In this document: in pieces, positions 396 through 51,190 of the stretch | How positions within the stretch are numbered: position 1 is the first letter of the stretch | Layout: each line of letters opens with the position of its first letter | Origin: Heteronotia binoei | Lineage: Eukaryota | DNA length: 64,000 nt | Direction of reading: 5' to 3' | Assembly (NCBI RefSeq): GCF_032191835.1 | Contig: NC_083237.1 | Location: 11,470,001-11,534,000 of the forward strand | Notes under the pieces: model-generated | Told to the model about the DNA's origin: nothing | Database searches by the model: none | What the model saw: only the letters and a program-made list of their open reading frames with translations | Translations under genes and position numbers: made by a program

Positions 396-490
396 CTCCT
401 TAAAGAAGCTAAAATAATGTCCCTTGTGTACCATCAACACCAAGAAGATCACCTCCCTTGGGCTTTGCAAAGGGGCATGATTAGGGAGAC
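396..490 (+). promoter_or_regulatory. Candidate OR promoter module (for OR-A)
   Basis: ctcctt..gaagc, taatgtcccttgtg, cctcccttgggctttgcaaagg. Homologous to five other copies upstream of ORs. Confidence 0.5.
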
Positions 491-1644
491 ACAATGATTG
501 AATCAGACTGCTTCCATATATACTTCTGATACAAAGAGAATAAATGGTTATGACAAAGAGGCAGGTTTTCCTACTTTGTGAGCCAAGAAACTAAGTAATC
601 TCCTAAAACACCCTTAGGATTCAGAAAGGTACAGGCTCAGAAAACAGATGTAAAGAGTGATTTTGTTGATTCACAGTGTTTGTCAACAGGGGAGGGTCAG
701 GGTTTTTTCCCAGTGAATTCGTTAATTTAAGACACCTCCTTCTGTGAAGAGAAGATCATGCCACTTTTGATTTGTTTGCAATAAAATTATTGTATAGCCT
801 GTAATGCAGAGATGCTAGGAGCTTGCCTGCATGTGCAGGCATAAAAACCTAGGGTTAGATTTAGCTACCTTTTGGTCACTCGAGCCTGCCCGATTCCCCT
901 CTGTGCTACATCTCACGTGCCTTTTACATGCAAGTCCTCAGATCCCCAATGTAGCATTTTTTAGTTGGACAGACAGAACCCCTTGTTTTGACAGCAGAAA
1001 AGGTGGCTGGATCCAACCCTTTAGGCGGAAGAATGCAGGAGACCAGAACAAGAGTGTCCTCTGTCAAAAATGGATAGCCAGTGGTGAGTATTTTGCAACA
1101 AGCCTTGAGACTTAGTGAGAAAGGTGAGCTATAAAGCAAGTGAAGAAATAAATGAAAGCTCTCACTTCTGAGTGCTGGATCAGAATCACTCGGTATGTTA
1201 TGTTTTGTGGTGGGAAGGAAATTAGAGAATACATGATACACTGTGAGGATGCCATGCCAGTCTGCAAAATCAAAAAAGAGTCCAGTGGCATCTTTAAAAA
1301 AATAGCATTTATTCAAGCAGAGGCTTCAAACACAATGATGTAAATCTATCAGGCTTGATTTAGATAAACGGGAAGAGTTTACAAAGAGAGACTGTGTGAG
1401 CAAAGAGAGAAGTATGCCTGCATATGAAAGCTTACATTCTGAATAAAACTTTGTTGGTCTTAAAGGTGCGGCTGGACTCCTACTTTGGTTTAAAGCGAGG
1501 CGCAGTCCAAAGGGTCCACTCAGACCATGATTGTGAAGTTTTCAGCAGTTGCGCTAGTCAAAATATAAAACCTACAAGGCTGTGAAATAAAACAAGGTGA
1601 TGCAATTGAAAGTCAACAGTGGTAGAACTCTAGTAATTGCCCTG

Positions 1645-1835
1645 AATTGGATGGCCCAGGCTAGCCCAGCCTTGTCAGCTGTTGGAAGCTACGCGCCATG
1701 TTGTTAGTACTTGGTGAGTACTCAGATGAGAAACCACCGAGGAAGTCCAGCATTGCTATGTACCTCTTATCCACCTCGTACCTGGACAACTCTATGGGGT
1801 CACCATAAGACAACTGCAGCCTGATGGCACTTTAA
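1645..1835 (+). mobile_element. Decayed 5S-rRNA-headed SINE with RTE-like tail
   Basis: ggaagcta...ttagtacttgg...gagaaaccacc resembles 5S rRNA. Tail ggggtcaccataag. Confidence 0.45.
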
Positions 1836-2519
1836 ACTTGTAGCTATAGTAATCAATAATCAAAAGGGGGTGGGAGAAGCAAGATGTTGACATTTATAGT
1901 AGATAAGAAATATCAGCTTCCTTTGAAGGCCTGCCTTTCGATGTTGGATTTATTGCTCTTTTCATATATGCAAGTGTCACAAGGTGGGATCGTGCTGTCA
2001 TAGATGCAAACTCTCTCAGTTCTTTAATTAAAATATTTATTTGATATTGCTCCTTGAATTTAATAGGTTATAATACTGCTAAACGCCTTGATTTAATTTA
2101 GCCATTTTTTCCCCCTTTTCGGCCACACATTGAAGTGCTAAACAGTGCCTTTAGAATCAGTTATATTATATCATGCCTCGAAAGATAAACTCTTCACCCT
2201 TTAGTTTCTCAGCATGATGAGTTTAAATGTCAGATGTATGTCCATTGATTTGTTTGAGCAAACATGGAACCCATGTAGAGAGAAGGAGGGCACTGCTGAC
2301 ACATGATGACATTTTTTTACACCAGAGAATGAGCCACTGGACAAGCCAGAGATAGAAGAGCTGATATGATTTGGTCCTGAATGCTTACTGGGACAAAGTT
2401 ACCATCTTGGTTTATTGCAGGGGCTGGTCCCTGAGTCTCTGTGTTAGCTATGTACGCAAGTGCTGTCAACTTGACAACTGATTTGTGGCAATCCCAGCAA
2501 GGGACGTTCAAGGCAAGCG

Positions 2520-2630
2520 AGAAGCAGAGGTGGTTTGACTTCCTTTACAGAACCTTCTTCTCTGGCCTCACAACCAAGTACTGACCCTGCTTAGCTTCTG
2601 AGAACTTATGAGATCGGGCTATACTATACC
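2520..2630 (-). mobile_element. 5S-rRNA-derived SINE head or pseudogene remnant
   Basis: Reverse complement reads cccgatctc...tcagaagctaagcagggtcagtacttgg. Confidence 0.5.
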
Positions 2631-2691
2631 ATTCCTCCTCCCCTCCTCTCCACGTATCTCTTTTAAATTGTGCGTTATGGTTGGTGCGTTG

Positions 2692-3197
2692 AACATATGA
2701 AGCTGCCTTATACTGAATCAGACCCTCAGTCCATCAAAGTCAGTACTGTCTACTCAGACTGGCAGTGGCTCTCCAGGGTCTCAAGCTGAGGTTTTTCACA
2801 CCTATTTGCCTGGACCCTTTTTAGTTGGAGATGCCGGGGATTGAACCTGGGACCTTCTGCTTACCAAGCAGATGCTCTTCCACTGAGCCACCGTCCCTCA
2901 CCTGACTGGCAGCGGCTCTTCAGGGTCTCAAGCTGAGGTTTTTCACACCTATTTACCTGGACCCTTTTATAGCTGGAGATGCCGGGGATTGAACCTGGGA
3001 CCTTCTGCTTACCAAGCAGATGCTCTTCCACTGAGCCACCGTCCCTCACTTGACTGGCAGCGGCTCTCCAGGGTCTCAAGCCGAGGTTTTTTACACCTAT
3101 TTGCCTGGACGCTCTTATAGCTGGAGATGCTGGAGATTGAACCGGGGACCTTCTACTTACCAAGCAGATGCTCTACCACTGAGCCACCATCCCTCCC
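2692..3197 (-). mobile_element. tRNA-headed squamate SINE (Squam2-like), head-plus-body triplicated
   Basis: Three ~148-bp tandem units, each with A/B boxes (tggctcagtgg.agagc; ggttcaatccc), sharing one (catatg) tail at 2692. Confidence 0.85.
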
Positions 3198-3292
3198 CTT
3201 GTTTTAGGTTAAGGAGCTGTTTGTAAGAGGAAAGGTCAGCTATTGTATATATTCAGAAGACTGTTGGTAATGCATTGGAAAGGTATTCAGCT

Positions 3293-3780
3293 CAGTGACG
3301 TAGCCAGAATTTTAAAAGGTAGGGGGGGGTTAAAAAGTTGGGGGGAACCCTTTCCCATCCACTACGGGGCTTGCTGCTTCTTCAAAGCTTTCTGGGGTAG
3401 GGACAAAAGCTGGAGGCTCTGAAAGTGGCCAAGTCGAGGCAGCTGACCCTAAAACTCTGGAGTCAAGAAGAGACTGCACCTTGCATGCAAGCGGGGGGGG
3501 GGGGTTCCTTCCACCTCCTTCTCCCCCACCCTGGCACTTTGCAGCCAGCAGCTCCGTCATTCCTCCCCCTTTCCCAGCCCATTTTGAGTGGCTTCCTCCA
3601 CCTCTCACTCCTCCACCTCCCTTCTCTCTGCTTCTTCTTTTGCTGCTGCACTGGACTGTGCCCTTCTCAGCTCACCCAGCTCCAGCTGTCGCTGATGATT
3701 CTTTGCTGGCTCAACCATGATGAGAGAGGGGGGGGGGGTCAGGCTGTGCCCCCACAGGCCCCTTTGTGGCTACAAGCCTG
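3293..3780. mobile_element. hAT-type non-autonomous DNA transposon
   Basis: TIRs cagtgacgtagcca / tggctacaagcctg. Perfect 8-bp TSD attcagct. Confidence 0.85.
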
Positions 3781-3965
3781 ATTCAGCTGCGTCCTGCAGG
3801 CATTCAGTTCTTATTTCCTTGCGTGTCTGTCTTGTAATTGGCTACTCCTGTGTAGCAACCTCACTTTGATTTTTATAACAACTTTGTAGCAGCCTTATGC
3901 TTTAAGCAGTTTCTCTGTATTCTACTATTGGTGTCCAAATCAATCATTCAGTTCTTAATTATATT

Positions 3966-4157
3966 CAGGGCTTTTCTTTTCTTTTTTTTGTAGCAGGAAC
4001 TCCTTTGCATTTTAGGCCACACACCCCTGATGTAGCCAATCCTCCTGGAACTTACAGTAAGCCCTGGAATAAGAGCCCTGTAAGCTCTTGGAGGATTGAC
4101 TACATCAGGGGGTGCGGCCTAATATGCAAAGGAGTTCCTGCTCCAAAAAAAGCCCTG
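3966..4157. mobile_element. Palindromic MITE (hAT-like)
   Basis: cagggcttt...aaagccctg, self-complementary along its length. Confidence 0.8.
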
Positions 4158-4255
4158 ATTCTATCGGCAATGGTCATGGTGGTTGAATTAATATTATCCA
4201 TAAAATACAACAGTAACAACTAATTTATTTTCCTTTCAGGGAGGTGCCGAAAAAG

Positions 4256-5194
4256 ATGAACAGCACCCCAGTGAGGGAATTCATACTTTTGGGCTTTACA
4301 GACAATCATAAGCTTCAAGTTGTACTCTTTCTCCTATTGATGGGAACATATCTGTTGACTATATCCGGGAACGTGGTGATCGTTGCGATCACGCTCTCCA
4401 GTCGCCGTCTCCACACTCCAATGTATTTCTTCCTCCGAAATTTTGCGCTCTTGGAGGTTGGATTCACCACTGCCCTCATCCCCAAAGCACTGGCCCACTT
4501 GGCCACGGGGCAGAGGACGATCTCCATCAGTGGCTGCTTCACGCAATGTTTTCTGTATTTTACCTTGGGGACAACGGAGTTCTTCCTGCTGGCGGTCATG
4601 TCATTTGACAGATACGTGGCCATCTGCCACCCTCTTCGTTACGCCACCATAATGAGTGGTCAACTCTGTTCCCTGCTAGTAGGTTGCTCTTGGGTTGGGG
4701 GCTTGTTGCTAATCCTGGGCCCAGCAATTGCTTTATTTCAGATGCCATTTTGCGGCCCAAACACTATAAACCATTTTTTCTGCGACAATGGACCGCTGAT
4801 CAAACTCGCCTGTGTAGACACAATTCTGATGGAACGCGTGGATTTCTTCATTGCCACGTTCTCTCTCATTGGAACTTTGGCAGTGACTGTCATTTCCTAT
4901 GCCAACATTATTTCTAGCATTTTGCGCATCCCATCGACTCAAGAGAGGCAGAAGGCTTTCTCCACTTGCTCCTCCCATATTATTGTTGTGTCCTTGTTCT
5001 ATGGCAGCTGTATCTTCATGTACGTGAGGCCTTCCCAAAGCGAAGGGTTTGGTTTCAATAAAGGAGTCTCCATTTTAAACACTGTGGTGACACCTTTGTT
5101 GAACCCCTTTATCTACACTCTCAGAAACAAACAAGTACACGAAGCTCTCAGAGATGCCAAAAGAAAGATATGTATTAGAAATCGGAAACACTGA
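4256..5194 (+). CDS. Olfactory receptor, class II, family-6-like (OR-A), 312 aa, intact
   Basis: MNST N-glycosylation site, [45 protein letters not shown]. The true ATG is at 4256; the ORF track starts at an upstream GTG. Splice acceptor tttcag ends at 4239. Confidence 0.96.
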
Positions 5195-6096: not shown

Positions 6097-7912
6097 CTAT
6101 ACTAGACCCGAAAGTATTTACAAGAAAAGGGATAGAAGTGGCCCTGTAAACTATTGTCCAATTAGCCTCCTTCCTGTTTAGGGCAAATTATATGCTAACT
6201 ACCTTCTTCTTGGGTTGGGGAGTTAGAGGCCAGGGTCTTCCATGTTGGAGTGTGAACAAACTGGTTATCCAATTGTACCATAAGCTCACCTCATCAGCAA
6301 ATATACATCATAAAAAAGGTGCAAGATTAAATGCTGTTTATTGATCTCTGGGCTAGATTTGACTCAGTATCTTGAGAGTGCTTTGTAACAAGGAGGCACT
6401 GACTACCTTACAGTAGCATCCCTACAGTGGGATCTGCATTTTCCTGACCTGAATTGGAAGCTACTGGTCAGAAACAAGCCAAGTGGAAACACTCTCTGTA
6501 AAAGCCAGAGAACTTCTCTGGGCTTGTCTGTCTGCATAAGGTTACAATATAGGCATCCTCCAGGTAAACTCCTTTCATTCCCCCCCTCCACCCATGATTG
6601 AATGTATAAGAACAATGGGTTTGCAGGTAAAGTATTGCTTATACCTTAATTGCTGGCTAGCAACTAATGGTTAATTTTCTCTTCCTTCCTGCTCCAACTA
6701 GGCATCTTTTTGTCTTACCTCGATGCTAATGCAGGCCACGTTGCACAAATCTTTTGCTTCTCTCCTGACTCCACCTCAGAGTATCGAAAGCAAATTGATA
6801 TCAAACCTTAAGCCCATCGTGGCCCTTTCTGACAACCGTCAAGGTTCATTCACATCTTTTTTCTTGAACTGGGAATCCATTCAGGCTCCCAGGAAGGACC
6901 CATCAAGAGCCACCGCGGCCCCAGAAGGGTCTCCACCCCTCCAAGCACTATATAAACTGAGAGAAAACCCCTCTACAGTGTGCATTCTGTAGGCACCTTG
7001 TACAGTCTGTATCCCTCATTACTCTCTGTAATTGGGTCTGTTGGACATGTCACAATTGTGGTGCATGTCCCATCTCCATTTTCCTCTATATGGACTTCTG
7101 CACATCCAGGACAGGTGAATATTGGCTCTAAAAATCACTATTCCTCGCCACCATCTTCCGAGCCTCTTGATTGTGTGTGTTGTATTACTTGTATGTGTGC
7201 GATTGTATTTTTTACATATTTTTTTCTAAGTAAACATTTTTTAAATATTTTAGATCTGGAGTCCTCCTTCTGATACTGGACATTTGTATTATTGGTGGAA
7301 AGTTACCTGCCACAGGGCTTTCTCTTTTTTTTAAAGCAGGGGTTAGCAGGGGGTGTGGCCTGATATGCAAATGAGTTCCAGCTGGGCTTTTGCTGCAAAG
7401 TGCTGCGTGAAACAATGACGATGTCAGGGGTATGTGGCCTGATATGCAAATGAGTTAATAGGGATGCAATCCCTATTAAACTGCTTATTGAAAAGATTAA
7501 TACTGTATCACCTGACACAAGGACTTAGGCAGAAATCATTCAGAGGATCAATGGCCCTCCATCAGGAACACCTCTGTCCTCATTGCCCTATCACTTAATA
7601 TCCAACTTAAACCTATAAGGTGATTTCCAGATGGTATTTGACCCCTGCTCAACTTTCGCATTCTATTCCTAATATAGTTCCCTTTTGGTGGAAACTCTGT
7701 GGTCTAAGGGCTACCATTTTTCATAAATGGTGGGCTTGCCCCGTGATCACAACTTTTTTGGAAGCAGATCCTTAATGAAATATTTAACATTGATATTGAC
7801 TTCAATAAAAAAAATAATGTTATTTATGAACAGCATGAGTGTCTACAGAATGGTTTCACATGGGTTGGATCCAGATTCATTTCTCCCACCATTGTAAGGT
7901 GGGAGAAAGCAT

Positions 7913-8208
7913 CAGATTTTGCTCTTCCTTCTACTGATGGGAACATACGGTATCTTTTGACTCTCTCCGGGAATGTGGTGATCATTGTGGTCACACTGTC
8001 CGATCACCGTCTCAACACTCCAATGTATTTCTTCCTCCAAAATTTTGCACTATTGGAGATTGGATTCACCGCTTCCATTGTTCCCAAAGCATTATCCAAT
8101 TTGGCCACTGGACAGAAGACTATCTCCATAGCTGGATGTTTCACACAGGGTTTTTCATATTTTTTTCCTGGAGAGCACAGAGTTTTTTCTACTGGCGGTA
8201 ATGTCTTT
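7913..8208 (+). pseudogene. OR pseudogene (psi-OR-B), 5'-deleted, OR-D-like
   Basis: Near-identical to TM1-TM3 of the ORs at 16418/24996 but lacks about the first 20 codons. It has a 5-nt insertion (tac-ggtat-ctt) and a +1 frameshift (ttttttcctggagag versus tttgtcctgggaac), then runs into an N gap. Confidence 0.88.
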
Positions 8209-8379
8209 NNNNNNNNNNNNNNNNNNNNNNNNNNNNNNNNNNNNNNNNNNNNNNNNNNNNNNNNNNNNNNNNNNNNNNNNNNNNNNNNNNNNNNNNNNNN
8301 NNNNNNNNNNNNNNNNNNNNNNNNNNNNNNNNNNNNNNNNNNNNNNNNNNNNNNNNNNNNNNNNNNNNNNNNNNNNNNN
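8209..8379. other. Assembly gap
   Basis: Run of N. Confidence 0.99.
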
Positions 8380-9855
8380 CAGTCTTTATGTATAAAAGGC
8401 AGATCAGTACTTTTATGTCTTCATTACTCTGAATTAATGCCCTAGTACAGTCATTTTAATGTAGTCCTCTGAGGTCAGTGGTCTTAGATTAGATTAACTA
8501 TGGATAGGATTGCATTGTTAGTTTCCTACATTTTTATCTCTCCTTTTGTCTAAGGGGCTCAATACAGTTTACATAGCTCTTTTCTCATTCACCATACTCT
8601 CAGAACCAGCCTGTGTAGTAGAACATTTAGATTTCAGCCAAGAAGAACCTTAGAGACCAAAAACAGTCTCTGTGGGGTTTCTGGACTCCAGGAACTGCAG
8701 AACATGATGGCTACCCACTGAAACCTATGAAGTAGGTTAGGGTGAGAGACAGTGACTTGTCCAAAGTCAACCAAAAAACTTCATGATCCTGTGCAAATTT
8801 GAACCCTGTTCATAACCACCACACCAAGCCAGCTAGAACAGTCAATGTGGCTGAGGGATTAAGACGCCATAATGCTTCCTTTAACCTCTCCCTACGGTTA
8901 CCCTTTTTTTGTGAGTGTGAAATGTGACAGTGCTCTGGAGGTACCATTGGTGGTTGGTTTTAAAACAGAAAAAGGGGAGTGGAGAATAGGGGTGGGATGT
9001 CCCCATAAGTCTGAACTCCAACCCACGGGACTACCACTATCAGAGAATGCAGAAAAAAAGAAGAGGATGATGACAATAAAGTGGAAATGACCCCTCAAGT
9101 TACTTGGTATAGTTTTGCTAGATGAAAAATGGTTCCATGTCCAATTGGTGGCTGTAGAGGCCATAGGTCATCGATGGAGCACTTGCTAGAATGAAGGAAA
9201 TTCCCACCTTCCATCCAAAGTGTCTCAAGTCTCGGACAAACCTATGGATGTGATGGGTTTTTTCCACAGGTACAGTATAGTTGAACGGGACAGGTGGAGT
9301 CATATTCTGACCTAGGTTGTGAATATTGGATGAATATGGGATGAAAGGTTCTGAATATGAGATAAAAGGATGTTTACACATGATAATGCTGACCTCATTC
9401 CTAGACGAGTTACCCAGAATTACTTGGCAGATTTCTAAGACATTCAGATACCTAAGGTAAGGGGAAGGAGGCTAAGTTAAAGATAAAACAATTAATTGTT
9501 AGCAACTATTTTAGACATGGCAAATCCTACAGCCAAAATAAGAGGGAAGTTGGAATTTTGAATGGGAAGTCTTACTGCAAATTAAAGCACTTTACTTTTC
9601 TTCCCATCTCTTTGTTGGAATGTTTTTGAGATGCACTGGCCTCCTTATGGGACCTCCAAATACATCCTGCAGAGCAGGGGTTACTGTTGAGAAAGTCCAT
9701 GTCCTCAATGAGGTTAGACAAACTTCTCATAATGGTTGAATCTCCAACAACTATTGGGAGAGATGGCCCATCAGGCTTGAGGGTCCTAGGCCATGATGTA
9801 TTTATTTCCTTGATCTATGCTCTACCTTTCTCCCTAATGGGGATCCAAGGTAGCT

Positions 9856-11070: not shown

Positions 11071-11582
11071 GCTGCCTTAGACTGAATATCAGATCCTTGG
11101 TCCATCAAAATTAGTCTTATCTACTCAGACTGGCAGTGGATCTCCAGGGTCTCAGGCTGAGGTCTTTCACCTCACTACCTACCAGGGCCTGAGGCTAAGG
11201 TCTCAGGCTGAGGTCTTTTACATCACTACCTACCAGGGTCTAAGGCTAAGGTCTCAGGCTGAGGTCTTTCACATCACTACCTACCAGGGTCTGAGGCTAA
11301 GGTCTCAGGCTGAGGTCTTTCACATCACTACCTACCAGGGTCTGAGGCTAAGGTCTCAGGCTGAGGTCTTTCACATCACTACCTACCAGGGTCTGAGGCT
11401 AAGGTCTCAGGCTGAGGTCTTTCACATCACTACCTACCAGGGTCTGAGGCTAAGGACTCAGGCTGAGGTCTTTCACATCACCACTATCTGCCTGTTCCTT
11501 TTAACTGGAGATGCCAGGGACTGAACCTGGGACCTTCTTGCATGACAGGCAGATGCTCTGCCACTGAGCCACAGTCCCTCCA
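11071..11582 (-). mobile_element. tRNA-headed SINE containing an internal minisatellite
   Basis: Head at ~11510-11580, tail at ~11071. Paralog at 28783-28968. Confidence 0.82.
11148..11481. repeat. 51-bp minisatellite, ~6.5 copies
   Basis: Unit ggtctcaggctgaggtctttcacatcactacctaccagggtctgaggctaa at 11148, 11199, 11250, 11301, 11352, 11403, partial at 11454. Confidence 0.95.
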
Positions 11583-11931
11583 CCAACATTTACAATAAAC
11601 TTTTACAAACTACTGATTTTAATATGTTTCACCGATAGGCACGGTAATCTTTGGTTTCAAGTGGATCATTATGAGAAGCTTGTCTGATCTCATTAAGAAC
11701 ATGGGCTTTCGCAACGGTAATCCCTGCTCTACAGAATGTATTTGGAGATCCCAAATGGAGTCCAGTGGATCTCAAAAACATTCAAACAAGGAGATGGGGG
11801 GGAGGGGAGTAAAATACTTTAATTTGCAGTAAGAGTTCACATTCAAAACTCCAACTTCCCTCTTGACATTTTGGTTATAGGATTTACCATGTCTAAAATA
11901 GTTGCTACCAATTAATTGCTGTTTTCTCATT

Positions 11932-13495: not shown

Positions 13496-13562
13496 CATAT
13501 AAAGACATAAACACATATGAGCATATTTTGAGCCAACTATCAGACACATCCTAAATGTTGCG

Positions 13563-13665
13563 CTCCTTGGGGAAGCACAGCTGAAGTCCCTTGTGTGGCC
13601 TGACAAACAAAGTGCTAAACCAATCTCACATATGCTTTGCAAAGGCCATTAGTTTAGAGGGAGAG
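13563..13665 (+). promoter_or_regulatory. Candidate OR promoter module (upstream of OR-C; E/F type)
   Basis: ctccttggggaagcacagctgaagtcccttgtgtggcctgacaa...gctttgcaaaggccatt. Confidence 0.5.
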
Positions 13666-13942
13666 TTGCGTAGCACACTACCAACAGGAGACTGCTGGCT
13701 CCAATAGATGGGTAGGATAAACGTTCAGTTTGTGAGCTGAGAAAGTCAAGGGCAATGGAAGGCATCAAGAATGTTACAGACTCAGTCTTGTGGAGTGAAG
13801 CTTCTGCATCCATTCATGTAGTGTGGGTAGCTTCATCTCAGTGGCCTCCATCAGGTCCTTTCTTAGCTGCAGGGGCTTCTTTGTTATCTGAAGAAACAAG
13901 AGCAAAGAACAAAACACTGGGAGGTCAAAAAACAAGAAGAAG

Positions 13943-14220
13943 AAGACCGTAGATTTCTCTGAATCTCTCTGATTTCTCTGATTCTCTCTGGATCAGAGTC
14001 TCCGAGCAGCTTACAATCACCTTTATATTCTTTCCCCACAACAGACACCCTGTGAGGTAGGTGAGGCTGAGAGAGCTCTCACAGAACCTGCCCTTTCAAG
14101 GACAGTTCTGCAAGACCTGACCCAAGGCCATTTTGGCAGCTGCAAGTGGAGGAGTGGGGAATCAAACCTGGTTCCCCCAGATAAGAGTCCGCATACTTAA
14201 CCACTACACCAAACTGGCTC
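13943..14220 (-). mobile_element. Squam3-like (MIR-derived) SINE
   Basis: ccactacaccaaactggctc head (reverse complement), acaccctgtgagg core, aagaag tail. Confidence 0.85.
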
Positions 14221-14344
14221 CAAAACAACCCAAAACTAACACACACCCCTAAAAATGCATGTATCCTTTGGTAACTAGGATTGCAAGTGGCAAGTATTTT
14301 GCTGTATGTGTGTGTGTGTGTGTTAAGTACCATCTAATAGCTTC

Positions 14345-14810
14345 TGACCTGGCAACCTTGAATTAATGACCTACAAAAATATCCTATCATGAACAGCCTT
14401 GCTCAGTTCTTGCAAATTTAGGGCTATGGCTTCCTCTGATAGAATTAATCCATCTCAAGTCAAGTCTTCCTCTTTTTTGCTGCCTCTCAATTTTCTCAAC
14501 ATGATTGTCTTTCCCAGTAACTCTCGTTTTCTCATAATGTGGTCAAACTATGATAGCATCAAACTTCTAGGGAGAGTTCAGGCTTGACTTGATCTAGAAT
14601 CCATTTATTTTTTGATCTCCATAGTATCTACAAAACACTCCTCCAACACCATTGCTACTGAATCAGCTTTCTTCCCATCAGGTGTCCTCATTGTCCAATT
14701 TCCAAACTCATACATAGTAATGGGGAATACTATAGCATAAGATATCTTGATCTTAATCACCAGAGATACGTCCTTACAATTATGGATATTTTCTACTCCT
14801 CTGCCCAATT
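14345..14810 (-). mobile_element. Old RTE-clade LINE 3' fragment
   Basis: YAIVFPITMY-like translation. Paralogous copy at ~35625-36090. Confidence 0.7.
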
Positions 14811-15764
14811 TTGCTAGGGAATATGAGGAGTTTATGATGGCATCATAAAAAGAGTTAGTCCTTCTAAGTAACTGAAATTAATGGAAATAGAATGGTGTAA
14901 CTTGGCTCACAATGGTCCTGTTAAGGTGTTACGTTTTGTATTTGTTATCTGGGATACAACTTTGTGGGATTTTATTTTTATCTAGCCACAAGGTAGTAAT
15001 AGTACTCACTTTGGCTCTCACTGGATCTCTATTTACTCTAAATAAAGATCAAGTGAGAGCCAAAGTAAGTAATATTACTATCTAGTGGTTAGATACGAAT
15101 AAAATTTATATAATCTAAATAACATTTATTTAATCTAAATTATTAATCTAAATTAATTTAAATTGTTAAGGGACGGACAGATATCTGACACAGATGATCT
15201 TTCTAGGTAACCTGTCATTTTTGTTTCTTTCTCCAAAAAGGCTTTGACACCACTTGAAATCTTCTGGAAGCTATAATGCTGAGCACCACCTAATCCAATT
15301 AAACCTGCAAAACATTCTGTATTCTACTCTAAACCTGAAGATCACAGTCCTTCCCTCATGGTGTGAAACATGTATTTTTCTTACCCTGCCCACACTTGCT
15401 GTTCAGTGGAGATTTCTCATACTGAATATACAATCTGATTTAAAAAAAAAAAAAAAAAAGTTTTGAAGACCTAATCCAATTAAGTCTGCAAAGTCCAATT
15501 TAGTCTGTATGGACTCACTATGTGTTGTGCACTTTGCATCCCTGTGAGAAAGGCTGACTATAAATAATGGAAATAAAATTAATAAAATAAAAGGGAAGGT
15601 TATGTGCATATGTCTGCTGGACATTAGGCACTTGTCAGGAGCACAAACCTTTTTTTTTTCTCAGCATATAGGATGAGCCTGGTCTAGGAAAGGGGCTCTA
15701 ATTGAGGAACCAGTGTTAAATTATAGAGATTAAGTAATTAAGAGATGGGGATTGTCCATCCCTT

Positions 15765-16262
15765 TGTTAGGAAGGACAAAAGGAAATACTTATACATACT
15801 GGGAGTGATTACAATCTGGAATTCACTACCAGAGATGTAGTGAATGCCACAAGGATAGACAAAGTTAAAAGACGATTAGATAGTTTTGTGAAGGGTTCAT
15901 CTATCAGTGGCAACTAGTTACAGTGACTAAGGAAAGGAAAGGAAAGGCCCCCTTTGCAAGCACCAGTCATTTCTGACTCGGGGGTGAAGTTGCTTTCAGT
16001 GGCTAAAGGGAACCTCTATTTTCTGAGGCAATCAAGCACTGAGTCCCATTGCCAGGAGGCAACTTCAGGGGAAAATCTCAGCCTCTGTAGCCTGTTGTTG
16101 GCCATCCAAGAGGAACTGGTTGGCCACTGTGTGAGATGGGATGCTGCACTAGATAGATCCAGCAGGGCTCTTGTGGCAGAATGTGCTAGGAGGACAGGGC
16201 AAAATAGGGTCTGTAGAACACAGCAATCATGTTTGTCCACACCTCTTCTTATATTCTTATGA
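15765..16262 (+). mobile_element. Old CR1 3' fragment interrupted by a short Sauria SINE 3' end (~15931-16000, minus)
   Basis: tggaattcactacc...tcttcttatattcttatg tail. Paralog at ~24010-24830. Confidence 0.65.
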
Positions 16263-16417
16263 TAATACTTGATTGATATTTGTCTAATACAGCAAGTCAA
16301 TTATTGACTGTAGTAGCTATGGCCATGTTGATTTAAAATCAAAAAGTTGTATTAATTTAATACTATACAACTAACTACCCATTTACCTTCATTTTCTTTT
16401 AGGCAAGTGTCAAAACG

Positions 16418-17356
16418 ATGAACAGCACCATGGTGAGGGAATTCATACTCATGGGCTTTACGAATAATCGTAAGCTTCAGATCTTGCTCTTTCTTCTACT
16501 GATGGGAACATACCTTTTGACTCTCTCCGGGAATGTGGTGATCATTGTGGTCACACTGTCCGATCACCGTCTCAACACTCCAATGTATTTCTTCCTCCGA
16601 AATTTTGCACTACTGGAGATTGGATTCACCACTTCCATAATTCCCAAAGCAATGGTCAATTTGGCCACCGGACAGAGGACTATCTCCATAGCTGGATGTT
16701 TCGCAGAGTTCTTTTTGTATTTTGTCCTGGGGACCACAGAGTTTTTTCTACTGGCAGTAATGTCTTTTGATAGATATGTGGCTATTTGCCACCCTCTTCG
16801 TTACGCCACCATAATGAATAGCACAATATGCTCACTGCTGGTAGGTTTCTCTTGGGCTGGGGGCTTTTTGCTAATTCTGGGTCCAACAATTGCTTTAACT
16901 CAGATGCCATTTTGCGGCCCAAACACTATAAACCATTTTTTCTGTGACAATGGGCCACTGCTCAAACTCGCATGCAGAGACACAAGTTTTCTGGAGCTCA
17001 TGGATTTCTTCATTGCCGTACTCTCTCTTGTTGGGACTTTGATAGTAACTGTTGTCTCCTATGCCAACATTATTTCTAGCATTTTGCACATCCCATCAAC
17101 TCAAGAGAGGCAGAAGGCTTTCTCCACTTGCTCCTCCCATATTATTGTTGTCTCCTTGTTCTATGGTAGCTGTATCTTTATGTATGTTAGGCCTGCCCAA
17201 AGCGTAGGGTTTGATTTCAACAAAGGAGTCTCCATTTTAAACACTGTGGTGACACCTTTGTTGAACCCCTTTATCTACACTCTCAGAAACAAGCAAGTAC
17301 ATGAAGCTCTCAGAGATGCCAAAAGAAAGATTTGTATTAGAAATTGGGGGAGCTGA
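16418..17356 (+). CDS. Olfactory receptor, family-6-like (OR-C), 312 aa, intact, chimeric
   Basis: All OR motifs present. Acceptor ttttag ends at 16402. The 5' part matches OR-D and the 3' part matches OR-A. Confidence 0.96.
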
Positions 17357-17855: not shown

Positions 17856-18345
17856 AGCTAGTTTGGTGTAGCTGTTAAGTGTTCAGCCTCTTATCTGGGA
17901 GAATCGGGTTTGGGGAGGGACGGTGGCTCAGTGGTAGAGCATCTGCTTAGGAAGCAGAAGGTCCCAGGTTCAATCCCTGGCATCTCCAATAAGGGTCCAG
18001 GCAAAAAGGTGTGAAAAACCTGAGCTTGAGACCCTGGAGAGCCACTGCCAGTCTGAGAAGACAATACTGACTTTGATGGACCAAAGGTCTGATTCAGTAT
18101 TAGGCAGCTTCATATGTTCATATGATTTCCCACTCCTCCACTTGCACCTGCTGGGATGGCCTTGGGTTAACCATAGCTATCGCAGGAGTTGCCTTGAAAG
18201 GGCAGCTGCTGTGAGAGCCGTCTTAGCCCCACCCACCTCCAGGGTGACTGTTGTGGGGGGAGAAGATATAGGAGATTGTAAGCCGCTCTGAGTCTCTAAT
18301 TCAGAAAGAAGGGCAGGGTATATATCTGCAGTCTTCTTCTTCTTA
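17856..18345 (+). mobile_element. Squam3-like SINE with a nested tRNA-headed SINE (17912-18123)
   Basis: Host head gggtttg|tgatttccc is split by gggagggacggtggctcagtgg...catatgttcata. Confidence 0.85.
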
Positions 18346-19690: not shown

Positions 19691-20043
19691 ACCCTTATAC
19701 AGGTTTCTAAAGCATACCACTTGCTAATTCCCTCACAGAAAGACGGGACAGCCAGCATTTCTGGTAACAGTTTATGGAAAAAACTGGCTATAATTTCAAT
19801 CCCACCCAAGGATGCAATCCCTATCAAAGGGCTTGTTAAAAAGATGTATATTATATTGCTTTGCTCAAATTCTAAGTTTTTACATCAATAAGAGACTGCC
19901 TGGAACAAGGATTTAGGCAGAAATCTTTCAGCAGATCAGTGGTCCTCCATCTGGAACACCTTCGTCTATACGGCCCTATCACTCAATATCCAACTTCAAA
20001 CCTATAAGGTGATCTCCAAGTGGTATTTGACCCCTGCTCAATT

Positions 20044-35093: not shown

Positions 35094-35124
35094 TACATCT
35101 TGAGCTGGCTTCATCAGATGCATG

Positions 35125-35240
35125 ATAATTGTTGCACTCCTTGGGGAAGCACAGCTAAAGTCCCTTGTGTGCCCTGACAAACAAAGTGCTAAACCAACCT
35201 CACATGTGCTTTGCAAAGGCCATTGGTTTAGAGAGAGAGT
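35125..35240 (+). promoter_or_regulatory. Candidate OR promoter module (for OR-E)
   Basis: TAATTG next to ctccttggggaagcacagctaaagtcccttgtg...gctttgcaaaggccatt. Confidence 0.52.
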
Positions 35241-35624
35241 TGTGTAGCACACTACCAGTGGGAGATTGCTGGCTCTAAGAGATGGGTGCAATAAAACATT
35301 CAGTTTGTGAGTTGAGAAAGCGAAGGGTTTGGTCAAAGGCATGGAAGGCGTCAGAATGTTACAGGCTCAGACCTGCGGAGTGAAGCTTCTGCATCCGTTC
35401 ATGTTGTATGGGTATCTTCATCTCAGTGACCTCCATCAGGTTCTTTCTTAGCTACAGGGGCTTCTTTGTCATCTGAAGAAACAAGAGCAAAGAAAAAAAA
35501 CTCCGGGAGATCAGGAAAAAAAATGCATATGTCCTTTTCCAACTAGGATTGCAAGTGGCGAGTATTTTGCTTTGTGTGAGTGTATGTGTGTTAAGTATCA
35601 TCTAATCATTTCTGAAATGGCAAT

Positions 35625-37266: not shown

Positions 37267-37406
37267 NNNNNNNNNNNNNNNNNNNNNNNNNNNNNNNNNN
37301 NNNNNNNNNNNNNNNNNNNNNNNNNNNNNNNNNNNNNNNNNNNNNNNNNNNNNNNNNNNNNNNNNNNNNNNNNNNNNNNNNNNNNNNNNNNNNNNNNNNN
37401 NNNNNN
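37267..37406. other. Assembly gap
   Basis: Run of N. Confidence 0.99.
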
Positions 37407-37780: not shown

Positions 37781-38722
37781 ATGAATAGCACCATGGTGAG
37801 GGAATTCATACTCTTGGGGTTTACGGGCAACCGAAAACTTGAAATTTCCCTTTTTCTGGTTCTTTTTGGGATGTATATTTTAACCATTATGGGGAACGTG
37901 ATAATAATTGTGGTCACATTGGTGGATCACCACCTCTACACCCCAATGTATTTCTTCCTCCGCCATTTTGCAGTCTTAGAGATTGGATTCACCACTTCCA
38001 TTACTCCCAACGTATTGGTCAACATGGCCATGGGCCGTAGAAGTATCTCCATATCTGGTTGCTTCACACAGTTCTTTCTGTACTTTGTGTTGGGGACAAC
38101 AGAGTTCTTTCTTTTGGCAGTAATGTCTGTTGACAGATATGTGGCCATCTGTAACCCTCTTCGCTACTCAACTATAATGCATGGTCAAGTCTGCTCACTG
38201 CTGATCCTTTGCTCTTGGCTTGGAGGTTTTCTACTGATCCTTGGTCCAGCAGTTGCATTATTTCAGATGCCATTTTGTGGCCCAAACACCATCAACCATT
38301 TTTTCTGTGACAACGGACCCCTGATCAAACTTGCATGTATCGACACGAGCCTACTTGAACGCATGGATTTTCTCATTGCTACAATCTCTCTCATCGGGAC
38401 CTTGATAGTTACCATTGTGTCCTATGTCAACATTGTTTCCAGCATCTTGCGCATTTCATCTTCTACTGGGAGGCAGAAAGCCTTCTCCACTTGTGCCTCC
38501 CACATCACTGTGGTGTCTATCACTTATGGCAGCTGCATTTTCATGTACATCAAGCCTCAAGGCAACAGTGAGTTCAACTTCAGCAAGTCAGTGGCGATTC
38601 TTAATGTAGTTGTGTCTCCTTTTTTGAATCCATTCATATACTGCCTAAGGAACAGGCAGGTTCAGGATGCCCTGCGAACTCTATGTAGACAGGGGACTGG
38701 GTTTTGTAAAAGGTCTGTGTGA
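37781..38722 (+). CDS. Olfactory receptor, family-6-like (OR-E), 313 aa, intact
   Basis: [41 protein letters not shown]. Acceptor ends at 37765. Confidence 0.96.
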   Translation: MNSTMVREFILLGFTGNRKLEISLFLVLFGMYILTIMGNVIIIVVTLVDHHLYTPMYFFLRHFAVLEIGFTTSITPNVLVNMAMGRRSISISGCFTQFFLYFVLGTTEFFLLAVMSVDRYVAICNPLRYSTIMHGQVCSLLILCSWLGGFLLILGPAVALFQMPFCGPNTINHFFCDNGPLIKLACIDTSLLERMDFLIATISLIGTLIVTIVSYVNIVSSILRISSSTGRQKAFSTCASHITVVSITYGSCIFMYIKPQGNSEFNFSKSVAILNVVVSPFLNPFIYCLRNRQVQDALRTLCRQGTGFCKRSV

Positions 38723-39347: not shown

Positions 39348-39760
39348 GAGAGCCAGTTTGGTGTAGTGGTTAAGTGTGCGGACTCTTTTTTTTTTTTTAA
39401 TATCAAAGCAGTTTATTGAAATAAAAAAAAACAAATAAAGCATAGTCATTGACCATATCGTCAGCGTCCTTACTTAAACAAGTTGGACAATCATACAATA
39501 TAGTACATTGGACTCTTATCTGGGAGAACTGCGTTTGATTTCCCACTTCTCCACTTGCAGCTGCTGGAATGGCCTTGGGTTAGCCATAGCTCTCACAGAG
39601 TTTGTCCTTGAAAGGGAAGCTGCTGTGAGAGCCCTCTTAGCCCCACCCACCTCAGAGGGTGTCTGCTGTGGGGGGAGAAGATGTAGGAGAATGTAAGCCG
39701 CTCTGGGTCTCTGATTCAGAGAAGGACGGGGTATAAATCTGCAGTCTTCTTCTTCTTAAA
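39348..39760 (+). mobile_element. Squam3-like SINE interrupted by a polyadenylated insert
   Basis: Head is split at ggactctt. Confidence 0.88.
39388..39509 (-). mobile_element. ~120-bp polyadenylated retro-insert
   Basis: Minus strand ends AATAAA-13 nt-poly(A). TSD ggactctt at 39380-39387 and 39510-39517. Confidence 0.85.
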
Positions 39761-43700: not shown

Positions 43701-44569
43701 GCTGAGTCTACTGATTTCCCTCCTCCGCCCTACCCCACTCTACCTATTATTCATTAGCTAAAATATAATTTAATTAATTAAATCCGCACGGCTCCTTAAT
43801 TATAAAACCCTCCCAACTCAATTTATCTGCCCTAATCAATTTGCCAAAATTATCATTCTTCCATTTAGCTAATTATTAAATAAATCAAAATCTTATTAAA
43901 TAACCAACAATTTACTAATTATACAATCCAATCTAATAATAGTGGCAGCTAAAATCGACTAGAATTGGGGGGGTTAAAAAGGGTTTTTGGAAAACCTTAC
44001 GCCAAGATTTCATATAAATATATCTGAAAGCACTGACAACATTGACCCCTGTGAGACACCACATGGAAGTTCTTCTAAAGCTCAAACAGCCTCCTCAGAG
44101 AAAACCATATCCCATCTTTGATCTGACAGAAAACACCAGAAGAAATGGAGAGAATGAGTAGACACACCTCAGGCAGAATCTAAATGGCTTTACAAGAACA
44201 AATAGTACACTAGTGGGATTTAACCAGATGAACGGGGAAGCATTATCCTTAACTACCTGTAGGCAGAGATCATTATGTCAATGGGTGAAAACATTTTGAA
44301 ATTAGTTGGTAAATGTTTAGTGATTTTTAAAAGGTTGCTGACTCTTATTTTTACATCTCTGTTCAGTTTCCTTATATTTATAACATAATTATCAGATGAA
44401 ATGTTCCTGCCAAAAATGAACAGTAAAACCTACAAAGAAGCCATGGGAAACAGCCCAGTTATGTTGGTTTTGCTTCGTTTGAACAGTACAGCACAGTAAG
44501 TTCCACAAGTACCCTTTAGAACAAATGGTGGTTCCTTGAGCCTGAATCAGATCTGTAGTAAAAGTTCTG

Positions 44570-44667
44570 CTCTTCAGGGAAGCACAGCTGAAATCCCTCG
44601 TGTGATCTAACAAGCAAAGCACTAACCCCTTGTGTGTTTTGCAAAGGCCATAAGCTTATGGAGAGAG
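44570..44667 (+). promoter_or_regulatory. Candidate OR promoter module (for OR-F)
   Basis: ctcttcagggaagcacagctgaaatccctcgtgtg...ttttgcaaaggccat. Confidence 0.5.
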
Positions 44668-44959
44668 CTATGTGCACCACAACCAACAGGAAGTTGCTGG
44701 AGCAGAGAGATGGAGAAATGAATACAATCAATTTTGTAGAAATGAATATAATCAATTTTCAGAGCCTGTGAGATAAGAAATCGAAGACTTTGGTCAAAGG
44801 TATAGAAGGTGCAGGCTCAGGAAATGGTTTCGTAGAGTGAACCTTATGCATCTCATGAACTTTGTCTGGGCAGCTTCTTCTTCGTGGCCACCTTCGGATT
44901 CTTTCTTAGCTATAACCTAAAGGGTTCAGGGGCTTCTTTGTCATCTGAAGAAACAAGAA

Positions 44960-45515
44960 CAAAATGTTGGGAGACCAGGAAAAAGACTGAATGTCCCCTT
45001 TTGGCAAACAGGATTGTAAGTGGTGAATATTCTTGCTAGGTGCTCTCATTTGGTTGGGGAAAAATAAAAGGGGTTTACAGTGCGTCCCTCAACAATTACA
45101 TTATTCCAAGTCCAATTAGTTGAGGATAAAGCATAATAATCATCTTTGAGTTAAGATAATGGTAACTTTTAGTGAAGATTCTATAACTTTGAATTTTACC
45201 TTTAGAATGTTTTTTATATATTTTGAATACCGGCGGAGGTCATAAATTAAAGGTGAGGCAGGAGAGGAAAATTTGTAATGTATTGGCTGATTATATTTGG
45301 GTTTTGATTGAAGTATATTTTTCAATATATTGCAAAAATAATAAAATTTGGTCTACCAAAATGTTGGGAGACCAGGGAAAAGACTGAATGTCCCCTTTTG
45401 GCAAACAGGATTGTAAGTGGTGAATATTTTTGCTAGGTGTTCTCATTCGGTTGGGGAAAAATAAAAGGGGCTTACAGTGCATCCCTCAACAATTACAATA
45501 TTCTAAGTCCAATTA
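44960..45515. repeat. 159-bp direct repeat (44960-45118; 45357-45515) around a 238-bp AT-rich spacer
   Basis: caaaatgttgggagaccagg...tccaatta occurs twice with few mismatches. Confidence 0.92.
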
Positions 45516-48044: not shown

Positions 48045-48986
48045 ATGAATAGCACCATGGTGAAGGAATTTATTCTCTTGGGGTTTACGGATAACCGAAA
48101 GCTTGAAATCTTTCTTTTCCTGGTTCTTTTTGGGATGTATATTTTAACCATCATGGGGAACCTGGCAATAATTGTGATCACATCAGTGGACCGCCACCTC
48201 TACACCCCAATGTATTTCTTCCTCCGCCATTTTGCAATCTTAGAGATTGGGTTCACCACTTCCATTATTCCAAACACATTGGCCAACATGGCCATGGGCC
48301 ATAAGAGGATCTCTATATCTGGTTGCTTTTCACAGTCCTTTCTGTACTTTGTCTTCGGGACAACAGAGTTCTTTCTTTTGGCAGTAATGTCTGTTGACAG
48401 ATATGTGGCCATCTGTAACCCTCTTCGCTATTCAACTATAATGCATGGTCAAGTCTGCTCACTGCTGGTGCTTTGCTCTTGGCTTGGAGGTTTTCTACTG
48501 ATCCTTGGTCCAGCAGTTGCATTATTTCTGATGCCGTTTTGTGGCCCAAACACAATCAACCATTTTTTCTGTGACAGCGGACCCCTGATCAAACTTGCAT
48601 GTATTGACACGAGCCTACTTGAACTCATGGACTTCCTCATTGCCACCATCTCTCTCATTGGGACCTTGACAGTTACCATTGTGTCCTATGTCAACATTGT
48701 TTCCAGCATCTTGCACATTTCATCTTCTACTGGGAGGCAGAAAGCCTTCTCCACTTGCGCCTCCCACATCACTGTGGTGTCTATCACTTATGGCAGCTGC
48801 ATTTTCATGTACATCAAGCCTCAAGGCAACAGTAAGTTCAACTTCAGCAAGTCAGTGGCGATTCTTAATGTAGTTGTGTCTCCTTTTCTGAATCCATTCA
48901 TTTACTGCCTAAGGAACAAGCAGGTTCAGGATGCCCTGCGAACTTTATGTAGACAGGGGGTTGGGTTTTGTAAAAGTTCTGTATGA
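48045..48986 (+). CDS. Olfactory receptor, family-6-like (OR-F), 313 aa, intact, close paralog of OR-E
   Basis: Same motifs including the shared MSVDRY variant. 5' and 3' flanks are homologous to those of OR-E. Confidence 0.96.
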   Translation: MNSTMVKEFILLGFTDNRKLEIFLFLVLFGMYILTIMGNLAIIVITSVDRHLYTPMYFFLRHFAILEIGFTTSIIPNTLANMAMGHKRISISGCFSQSFLYFVFGTTEFFLLAVMSVDRYVAICNPLRYSTIMHGQVCSLLVLCSWLGGFLLILGPAVALFLMPFCGPNTINHFFCDSGPLIKLACIDTSLLELMDFLIATISLIGTLTVTIVSYVNIVSSILHISSSTGRQKAFSTCASHITVVSITYGSCIFMYIKPQGNSKFNFSKSVAILNVVVSPFLNPFIYCLRNKQVQDALRTLCRQGVGFCKSSV

Positions 48987-49277
48987 ACCTTCTGCAGAGT
49001 ATCTCATTGAAGCATACTCTCACTGAGCTTAAAGAAAAGAATTAGTCACTTTGAAGGTTAAACCCAGAAAATTTGAGAAAGTAGACAGTCTGATTTATCA
49101 TTTCTGAGTTGACAGGTACCTTTATGTCTCTTTTGTGGTGAAGCTCTTGTTGAAGGAAACTAAAAATTACTGAAGAAAGTCTCATTTCAGCTTGAAGATT
49201 CAAAGAAGAATTGTCAGTAATTATAACCACAATTATAATAATAGGTAAGTGACAGCAGTTAATTTCGAGATGAATAT

Positions 49278-49393
49278 GAACTCATGGACTTCCTCATTGC
49301 CACAATCTCTCTCATCGGGACCTTGACAGTTACCATTCTATGTCAACATTGTTTCCAGTATCTTGCACATTGGCACTTTCTCGTTGCCACAAT
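49278..49393 (+). pseudogene. Isolated OR TM5-coding fragment
   Basis: gaactcatggacttcctcattgccacaatctctctcatcggg...ttgcacat matches ~48631-48729 with a 5-nt deletion. A 19-nt partial re-copy follows at 49375-49393. Confidence 0.88.
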
Positions 49394-51103
49394 AGATAGA
49401 TGATAGAGAGATTATATATAGATGATGGATAGATGAGAGAGAAGGAGAGAGAGAGATGCAAGCATATTGGCGCTTTCTGGCTCTTTCTTTGGCTGTGGTG
49501 TGTACTCTTGAGCACAGCCATTGGACAATCAATCACCATTTAAGTTCTGTTGCATTCCATTGGTTGAGTCCACTCCTTTCTTCCACCTACTGTGGCATTC
49601 AGAAGAGAAAGCAGGTAGCGGTGGGGAAACAGTAAAGAGACAGGAAATGAAGGTGGTAATGTGACTAGGTGTCAAGGCCTGGCCCCACTGGGAGCATTTC
49701 CTCAGAGGCCATGGCTGACACCTCTTTCCTATCACTTTCTCCCTCCCTCCTCCCCTCAGCCTCACCCCAGGACAGACAAGGATTGGGCTACTAGGGAAGC
49801 TGCTATGCAGAGGCTGTTGATAGGCAACCACACTTGGTTCTGTCAGTAAAGGGAGAGTCTTAGTTGAATATAATGCCATAGAGTTTATCCTCAAAGCTGT
49901 TATTTTCCCCAGGAGGAGAGATATATGTTGTCTGGAGTTCAGTTGTCATACCAGAAAATCTTCAGGCTACACTTCGAGGCTGGCTACCCTCAGCCTGGCT
50001 GCTAGCTATTGTTCAGCAGCAGCCTCCCTATGACAGGATCTGCTAGACACAGGTTCTTGCTGTGGAAGCTGACTGAGTGATTTTGTACTAGTCACAATCT
50101 TTCTGCCTAATCTACCTCACAAGGTTGTTGTGCAGATCAAAAAAGTGAGAGGAGAATGATGTATGCTGCTTTGGTCATCACTGTAGAGAAAGACTGTACT
50201 TTTCCTAGGTAGAGGCTGTATGAATACCATCTCTGTTATTAGAATCTGTCGAACAGATAGATTGCAAGAACCATACTGGTACAAGCGGGGGAAGTGCTTG
50301 GATGTATCTTATGGTTATGGAGGGGGGGAGGGCTAGGACAGATATCTAACAAAGACTCCTTTGCAAATCAAACAGAAAAACAGAAAAAATGGAGACTATT
50401 CTCTGCACACTGCACAGATTCTACAACTATATCATTCCTTATTGTACACACAACCACACACAGAGAGTAAAAAAATGAATACTTTTAAGATGCACTGATT
50501 TAGAAAGTCTGTAACTTTATTAAAAGTCTCTTTAAAATGTAGTTTGCTTTTAAAAAGACCTTTGGGAAATATTGAGTTTTGTTAATATATTGAATTGATG
50601 TAACATAAATCTTGTTTTGTATATACTGTACATTTAGAGAAATAAAAGTATTTGAACTTTAATATTGTTGTTGGTTATTTGTTTTTGACCTTTTAAATAA
50701 TTTCATATGTCAGCTGAAAAAAAAATCTCTGGGTATCAGATCCACATATGAAATATTCAGTGCCATTGGTCAAACATCAGAGAAGCCCCTAGTAATTTTT
50801 TGAACCAAAAAGCCCACCAAGAAAAAGTGGATGGGAGTCCAACTATTTGGACTCTTTTGGATCCCTAAACCCTGAACACCTGGCAAAATACATTATTAGT
50901 AATTAGATTAGTATTGTTAGTTGTTTTATATGTTTCTTTGTGGTATGGTTTCTGTTTATGACCAGAGAGATGCACTAAAATTATGACCAATAAAAACTGC
51001 ATGATTTTAATCATTATTTGCCTCATGTATCATCAAAAGAGTCAGAATATAGATGAGGTAAATAAAATACAAATGAATGAATGGATTTGCCTCATCTGAT
51101 GTG

Positions 51104-51190
51104 CTTCTCAGGGGAGAAGGACTAATGTCCCCTGTGCACCCTAACAAGGAAAGATGTAACATTTCTTGCACTCTGCAAAGGCATTGTGTT
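51104..51190 (+). promoter_or_regulatory. Candidate OR promoter module (for psi-OR-G)
   Basis: cttctcaggggagaaggactaatgtcccctgtgcaccctaacaa...ctctgcaaaggcatt. Confidence 0.48.

Follow-up and report, generated by a model that had tools for sequence, protein, structure and literature searches.

Our literature search returned mammalian promoter studies only, and reptile olfactory receptor (OR) regulatory DNA is apparently undescribed. In the mouse, the 200 bp 5′ of OR transcription start sites (TSSs) show an enrichment of O/E and homeodomain sites (PMC3247239, PMC3247230). The promoter regions of the mouse V1R genes are well conserved within subfamilies (Stewart & Lane 2007, PMC1955453), and the mouse OR clusters contain the ‘Greek Island’ enhancers (Monahan et al. 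2017, PMC5608512). Here, we analyzed a 64,000-nucleotide stretch of the gecko Heteronotia binoei (NC_083237.1, positions 11,470,001 to 11,534,000; the window), in which a short non-coding block recurs once upstream of each of six OR genes (OR-A, -C, -D, -E, -F, and -G). A sequence-only reading had taken this block for the promoter plus the non-coding first exon of the OR clade. Our comparisons support this assignment, and we put the probability at roughly 0.7 that the block is a proximal promoter specific to the clade and that a non-coding exon 1, spliced to the coding exon, comes after it. The block itself probably represents the promoter part only, and the end of exon 1 would lie 360–710 bp further 3′.

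A profile for nhmmer was built from the three obvious copies (13540–13680, 35114–35254, and 44547–44682). It recovered three more copies, at 374–489 (E 1.3e-10), 51094–51192 (E 7e-9), and 21658–21754 (E 0.016, the weakest), and no further copy below E 0.3 in the 64-kb window. All six copies are thus homologous and lie where the sequence-only reading had placed them, on the + strand, each 5′ of one OR coding exon. The module was originally described as ~100 bp long. Its existence is confirmed, but it is larger: the copies defined by the hidden Markov model (HMM) span ~130 bp and begin ~20 nt before the starts noted earlier. Copy A (A-type, 373–503) is located 3.9 kb 5′ of the OR-A ATG at 4256, copy C (EF-type, 13540–13677) 2.9 kb 5′ of the OR-C ATG at 16418, and copy D (D-type, 21653–21773) 3.3 kb 5′ of the OR-D ATG at 24996. 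Copy E (EF-type, 35114–35251) precedes the OR-E ATG at 37781 by ~2.7 kb, a distance that is an estimate because it includes the estimated 140-N assembly gap at 37267–37406. Copy F (EF-type, 44547–44679) lies 3.5 kb 5′ of the OR-F ATG at 48045, and copy G (G-type, 51083–51213) 2.4 kb 5′ of the OR-G ATG at 53518. Counted from the earlier starts, the distances are 3860 (A), 2855 (C), 3322 (D), 2644 (E), 3475 (F), and 2414 nt (G), in line with the 2.4–3.8 kb proposed. Copies C and E are 92–94% identical across the first 100 bp. The weak copy D (21674) is validated by its clear orthologues in Gekko and Paroedura. Between paralogue types, the homology has a sharp onset at the block start and fades at ~+290.

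A sensitive same-strand comparison of the 5′ regions of types A, D, E, F, and G yielded only three co-linear similarities: the block (−5 to +120), a donor box 360–710 bp downstream, and an acceptor region (−73 to +30), where the similarity covers the last 45–73 nt before the ATG. The claim that the module aligns even where the flank has diverged was therefore borne out, the two splice-site islands being the only other segments that align between types. The order of block, donor, acceptor, and ATG is constant everywhere.

In the donor box, conserved exon sequence leads up to a strong 5′ splice site (…ATGTCCTTT…GGATNGNAAGTG|GTGAGTATTTTG), the donor scores being rough values from an approximate 5′ splice-site matrix. 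The box is recognisable in genes A, C, D, E, and F and in their gecko orthologues. In Gekko and Eublepharis, a donor profile made from the window copies finds matches between block and coding sequence (CDS), at E 6e-5 to 2e-11. The box is less clearly recognisable in Tiliqua (GTG|GTAAGT), in Elgaria (CTG|GTGAGT), and in the genes of locus L010, 14 kb beyond the window. All donors in the window are on the + strand. In gene A, the box at 1035–1106 has its GT at 1084–1085 (GTG|GTGAGT), the putative 3′ end of non-coding exon 1. The corresponding boxes are found at 14244–14313 in gene C (GC at 14290–14291, GTG|GCAAGT), 22042–22114 in D (GT at 22091–22092, AGG|GTGAAT), 35511–35580 in E (GC at 35558–35559, GTG|GCGAGT), and 44974–45045 in F (GT at 45023–45024). 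Gene F has a second copy of the box at 45371–45441, which stems from a local tandem duplication (44960–45118 / 45357–45515, 95% identical). Gene G has a strong donor at 51444–51452 (CTG|GTGAGT, GT at 51447–51448), and the same CTG|GTGAGT recurs 3′ of the Gekko block orthologous to G. Another candidate, AGAAG|GTWACAGGCTCAG at ~+275, was rejected as the exon end for the genes in general: the EF-type sequences of Gekko and Eublepharis lack its GT, and D-type sequences have no counterpart. One of the four Tiliqua ORs is frameshifted (L004:17921–19724, tblastn split at 19254), and it alone has lost the donor GT (GTGATAAGT versus GTGGTAAGT in the other three).

On the 3′ side, a pyrimidine tract and a strong acceptor AG stand 12–16 nt before each ATG. 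In gene A, this site occupies 4220–4239 on the + strand; 4239 is the last base of its AG and lies 16 nt 5′ of the ATG. In the other genes, the last base of the AG is 16402 in C, 24983 in D, 37765 in E, 48029 in F, 53501 in G, and 60441 in H, all on the + strand. Since the coding exon opens at an acceptor, it must be preceded by another exon. The acceptor at 4239 is also used by NCBI model P0004 of OR-A (328 aa).

For the comparison with other species, loci around homologous ORs were searched using a profile built from the six window copies alone. The total came to ~330 kb from 10 genomes (the window, the 26.8 kb directly upstream of it, and 11 related loci). Copies were found in Gekko japonicus (locus L001: 7072, 13877, and 20273; E 6e-27 to 4e-20), Eublepharis macularius (L003: 3359, 8207, 11909, and 19730; E 3e-25 to 7e-9), and Paroedura picta (L002: 8128 and 17558, E 4e-12 and 5e-11; 16097 on the minus strand, E 0.0065). 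Outside the geckos, the profile matched Tiliqua scincoides (L004: 1382, 8903, 13525, and 17935; E 1e-10 to 7e-6), where all four ORs (4/4) have the block, Lacerta agilis (L005: 389, 9363, 12755, and 12890; E 3e-8 to 2e-4), and Elgaria multicarinata (L008: 8482, E 6e-16; 5045 on the minus strand, E 2e-6). According to a tblastn map of OR-like segments, the matches are all in sense orientation, 0.6–5 kb 5′ of an OR, wherever the downstream gene falls inside the locus; for L001:20273 and L003:19730, it would fall past the locus end. The two minus-strand matches, in Paroedura and Elgaria, precede minus-strand ORs. Two divergent copies (L010:6883 and 14238, E ~0.01–0.02) precede the two ‘6C74-like’ ORs beyond the window, and a profile made from them matches back to window copies E and C.

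The block is therefore present as one sense copy per in-clade OR in seven species and is conserved across Gekkota, Scincoidea, Lacertoidea, and Anguimorpha. The lineages of the skink, the lacertid, and the anguid diverged roughly 150–200 million years (My) ago. Four block types could be distinguished. The A-type comprises window copy A, Paroedura 8128, and Eublepharis 3359 and 8207; the D-type window copy D, Gekko 7072, and Paroedura 17558, orthologues that align over >450 bp; the G-type window copy G and Gekko 20273; and the EF-type window copies C, E, and F, Gekko 13877 (the orthologue of copy F), and Eublepharis 11909 and 19730. Because the types have orthologues across gecko families, they predate the gecko family split.

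Maximum-likelihood trees of the coding sequences placed every block-bearing OR in a single squamate clade (support 100/97), with a Sphenodon protein as its sister, and all block-less ORs outside it. NCBI names its members ‘OR 6E1-like/49-like/6C74-like’. OR-H groups with Thamnophis and other snake genes in a separate clade, and the tested turtle and alligator genes are likewise outside. The distribution of the block follows this division. In the ~330 kb searched, its significant matches are all in sense orientation and 5′ of ORs of the one clade, with none near out-clade ORs, so that within this sequence it does not behave as a dispersed repeat, the check proposed earlier. The 26.8 kb directly 5′ of the window, with ORs of another family, gave no match, and the Alligator sinensis, A. 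mississippiensis, and Mauremys loci (L006, L009, and L012) gave no significant profile match. In the Thamnophis locus (L007), no block was detected near the annotated gene start even at E 50. This gene is the OR-H orthologue, so its lack of a block says nothing about in-clade snake genes (Candoia). The sequence-only reading had found no copy for OR-H, and three profiles (Heteronotia-only, all-squamate, and L010-type) agreed, giving no block in its upstream region (54444–60460). The membership of OR-H in a different OR clade explains this absence. About 2.0 kb 5′ of OR-H, a TAATGTCC-like doublet at 58425–58462 (TTAATGTCCTTG, TTATGTCCCTTGACA) looked promoter-like and was discarded, as it is not conserved upstream of the snake orthologue. 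It is followed by TATAAAAG at 58504 and GAG|GTAAGC at ~58557.

The best conserved columns of the block are GCTCYTNRGGGAAGCA (box 1) and CTAATGTCCCTTGTGT (box 2). The motifs on which the promoter proposal was based are all present: TCCTTGGGGA at 13564 and 35138, TCTCTAGGGA at 21675, TCCCTTGGG at 454, TAATTG at 35126, and TAATGA at 21708. Allowing ≤1 mismatch to the EBF consensus TCCCNNGGGA, the first 50 bp of 26 copies contain 12 matches, as compared with ~0.5 expected from a background of 3.8e-4 per position in the same loci. The matches cluster at offset ~+24, which is box 1. Counting box 1 and box 2 together, 13/26 copies have a site of this kind, in keeping with the O/E-like reading of box 1. 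As the 26 copies are homologous, the match count shows a conserved O/E-like site and not independent events. TAATTG and TAATGA are copy-specific and not conserved, TAATTG being limited to copy E and the L010 copies; the conserved TAAT is the one that abuts TCCC in box 2. This arrangement is found in the A, D, and G types and in Elgaria. At the same position, the EF type has TGAA, TAAA, or TAAC, and Tiliqua has TCAT or CAGT. The L010-type copies carry TCCCATGGGT at box 2. The motifs CNTCTGG/TCTGGR (PMC3247230) were too short for evaluation.

Position, orientation, clade restriction, and depth of conservation together make the proximal promoter of a squamate class II OR clade the most likely identity of the block. 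In the proposed arrangement, the ~130-bp block, with its O/E(EBF)-like box (GCTCYTNRGGGAAGC) and its TAAT-G-TCCCTTGTG box, would be bound by Ebf- and Lhx2/Emx2-type factors, and transcription would start within 100–300 bp 3′ of it. Non-coding exon 1 would end at the donor 360–710 bp after the block start. An intron of 1.7–3.2 kb, packed with debris of short and long interspersed nuclear elements (SINEs and LINEs), would then lead to the acceptor before the single coding exon, donor and acceptor presumably being joined in the mRNA. The block would be ancestral, copied at each tandem duplication, and retained by selection while the surrounding DNA turned over.

Several observations weigh against this reading. 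Within geckos, the similarity of the block (0.68–0.81) is not far above that of its flanks (~0.5–0.75, with one Paroedura flank unalignable), and Heteronotia–Gekko introns still align at 76–80%. The expectation that the block is more conserved than its flanks was thus confirmed between paralogue types and in the skink, the lacertid, and the anguid, but only to a modest degree within geckos, and the argument for constraint draws on the comparisons between deep paralogues and across infraorders. The A-type copies have a degraded O/E-like box (TCCTTAAAGA, 3 mismatches), two Eublepharis EF-type copies have lost the box through deletion, and TAAA or TAAG is the usual form of the upstream TAAT-like element. 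At the conserved donor, genes C and E have GC in place of GT. GC donors usually show a consensus such as G|GCAAGT or G|GCGAGT. Judged by these sequences, C and E may have GC-AG introns, or the E lineage may use another donor. Model P0004 joins the acceptor at 4239 to an exon 21 kb upstream and not to the block unit. From this 32-nt coding first exon, which adds 11 residues (MFRGSSTLNIR), the model (span L011:10001–31991, reaching into window 1–5194) runs across another OR gene. The join is most likely due to an artefact of the model or to a rare read-through splice, and neither supports nor refutes a promoter. Lastly, no conserved TATA box was found.

The last point, together with the lack of a conserved initiator, favors the main rival of the promoter reading. 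Here, the block would be a gene-proximal enhancer or a transcribed 5′ untranslated region (5′-UTR) element of the same transcription unit, with the TSS further upstream or near the donor box. The variable block-to-donor distance (360–710 bp) would suit such an element, and the TAAT abutting the TCCC half-site (TAATGTCCCTTG) recalls the mouse Lhx2/Ebf composite enhancer motif. Against it, each gene has a single sense copy that is always the most 5′ conserved island, and the sequence 5′ of the block is unconserved between paralogue types. Mouse OR enhancers number about one per cluster and not one per gene (PMC5608512). The TAAT-to-TC spacing is also 2 bp off the single mouse composite example compared, which comes from the same source. 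We consider the enhancer or 5′-UTR explanation unlikely, though more probable than the other competitors.

A bolder version would make the block a ~200-My-old, clade-private ‘choice’ element, in which TAATGTCCCTTG gives each gene an enhancer-like composite site. If true, this element would set the expression zone or the choice probability of the clade independently of cluster-level enhancers. On the sequence comparisons made here, it is an improbable extension. An exact copy of the 12-mer TAATGTCCCTTG (box 2), followed by GAGAAG, was noted at L012:12167–12185 in Alligator mississippiensis, in sense orientation and 729 bp 5′ of the ATG (12896) of an OR. The expectation for all searched sequence was ~0.04 exact matches, and the profile E-value at this site is not significant (2.3). 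This copy would make the core as old as the common ancestor shared by lepidosaurs and archosaurs.

The data contradict the two remaining explanations. A passive, functionless remnant of a recent tandem-duplication unit would fit the 80–92% identity of C and E over ~2 kb upstream, the alignment of the Tiliqua paralogues along the full 1 kb, and a conservation at the gecko level that is only modestly above the flanks. However, paralogue types with unalignable introns still share the block, each type has orthologues in other gecko families, and the block is detectable in skink, lacertid, and anguid, far past the reach of neutral alignment, which makes a remnant very improbable. Least probable of all is a dispersed repeat fragment (SINE, LINE, or DNA transposon) that the ancestral OR unit happened to contain: SINEs and LINE fragments abound in the window and the 5′ homology edge between paralogues is sharp, but the ~330 kb hold no antisense or OR-unlinked copy, the block has no tRNA or Rfam match (the tRNA-like matches are all in other repeats), the true SINE families of the window occur in both orientations and in many places, and orthologue pairs stay homologous 5′ of the block.

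As a candidate promoter, the block resembles the mouse class II OR promoters in its position a few kb 5′ of an intronless CDS with an acceptor just before the ATG, and in its O/E-like box (≤1 mismatch in half of the copies) with, in some types, a TAAT core nearby. It differs in being alignable over ~130 bp, clade-wide, and kept across squamate infraorders, where the mouse promoters share a short motif pair. The squamate block is also a predicted promoter, its O/E match is degenerate or lost in some groups, and a conserved TATA box is missing. The mouse V1R promoters are similarly conserved within locally duplicated subfamilies, and their homology peaks at the TSS region, distinct from the rest of the ‘gene block’; we liken the gecko block to these peaks. 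In contrast, the V1Rs are another receptor family in another tissue, and their promoter blocks are ~1 kb long and validated by 5′-RACE, as compared with ~130–290 bp in the gecko. With the Greek Islands (PMC5608512), the block shares, in some of its types, a homeodomain core beside an Ebf-like half-site (TAAT-G-TCCC) within an OR cluster. The reverse strand of the Sfaktiria probe reads TTAATTGATCTCCAAGGAA in Supplementary file 7 of that paper. Its TAAT-TGA-TCTCC differs from the TAAT-G-TCCC of the block by 2 bp in spacing, this probe being the single example compared. Greek Islands are intergenic, few per cluster, and not tied one-to-one to genes, whereas the gecko block occurs once per gene, in a fixed sense orientation and a fixed order relative to the splice sites.

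Nothing established is overturned here, as subfamily-conserved chemoreceptor promoters with O/E-like sites were already known in the mouse. The block provides a sequence handle for finding, in squamates that lack olfactory transcriptomes, where the promoters and first exons of an entire OR clade lie, and it helps correct gene models such as the 22-kb NCBI model of OR-A. It also lets one ask whether the Ebf/Lhx2 logic of mammalian OR choice extends to lepidosaurs. As a promoter, it would be a clean natural example of one that outlasts repeated tandem duplication and heavy transposon turnover.

The window contains seven OR coding exons, all on the + strand and each matching Pfam 7tm_4 (E 1e-48 to 1e-51). 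As placed by this match and the tblastn map, they are OR-A (4256–5194), OR-C (16418–17356), OR-D (24996–25913, cut by a gap), OR-E (37781–38722), OR-F (48045–48986), OR-G (53518–54444), and OR-H (60460–61416), the gene without an upstream block and from the other OR clade. OR-G has an in-frame TAA at 53611–53613. This is codon 32, where the paralogues have Tyr. OR-G is probably a pseudogene, or else the codon reflects a sequencing error. Despite the TAA, the gene retains an intact block and an intact donor, which are both conserved with Gekko.

OR-C appears to be composite. Its block, exon-1 region, and distal intron (13539–15471) are E-like (80–92% identity), its proximal intron and CDS (15543–17327) are D-like (78–90% identity), and the coding sequences of C and E are just 74.6% identical. 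This pattern suggests a chimeric gene that would have arisen by unequal crossover or gene conversion, with a breakpoint near 15471–15543.

The three assembly gaps (8209–8379, 25914–26122, and 37267–37406) were left unfilled, and none of them touches a block. The first is located outside every block-to-ATG interval and interrupts an OR fragment at 7907–8208, which is 89.7% identical to C and D over codons ~19–119. No block was found ahead of this fragment, between 5194 and 7907. The right flank of the gap (8380–8494) resembles sequence past the end of the CDS of D. This leaves ~640 nt of CDS unaccounted for, so that the two sides of the gap are discontinuous at its stated length. Going by this alignment, either the gap would be far longer than estimated or the fragment gene would be truncated. 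The second gap lies inside the CDS of D after codon 306 and removes its last codons. A ‘377-aa ORF’ (open reading frame) at 24996–26129 is an artefact that reads through the N of this gap. The third is located in the putative intron of E, 375–514 nt 5′ of the ATG. On either side of it, the sequence is co-linear with F, and the order and orientation are therefore sound.

The remainder of the window consists of SINE and LINE debris. Reverse-transcriptase ORFs are found at 19115–21197 and 31692–33763. In gene C, one SINE copy (13935–14221) separates the block from the donor box, in the predicted exon-1 region. Its family (~230–280 bp) occurs elsewhere in both orientations, at 18123–18345, 22486–22764, 24346–24730, 31298–31577, and 39509–39757, with further copies at 51865–52139, 52146–52388, 54587–54864, and 55711–56068. 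tRNA-derived SINEs are also present, and the Rfam tRNA and ARAGORN ‘tRNA-Thr/Asp/Pro’ calls in the window were dismissed as SINE-derived rather than real tRNA genes. The tRNA-derived family was located at 2690–3199, 11454–11587, 17909–18125, and 51589–51799, and it forms a triple tandem array at 2757–3199.

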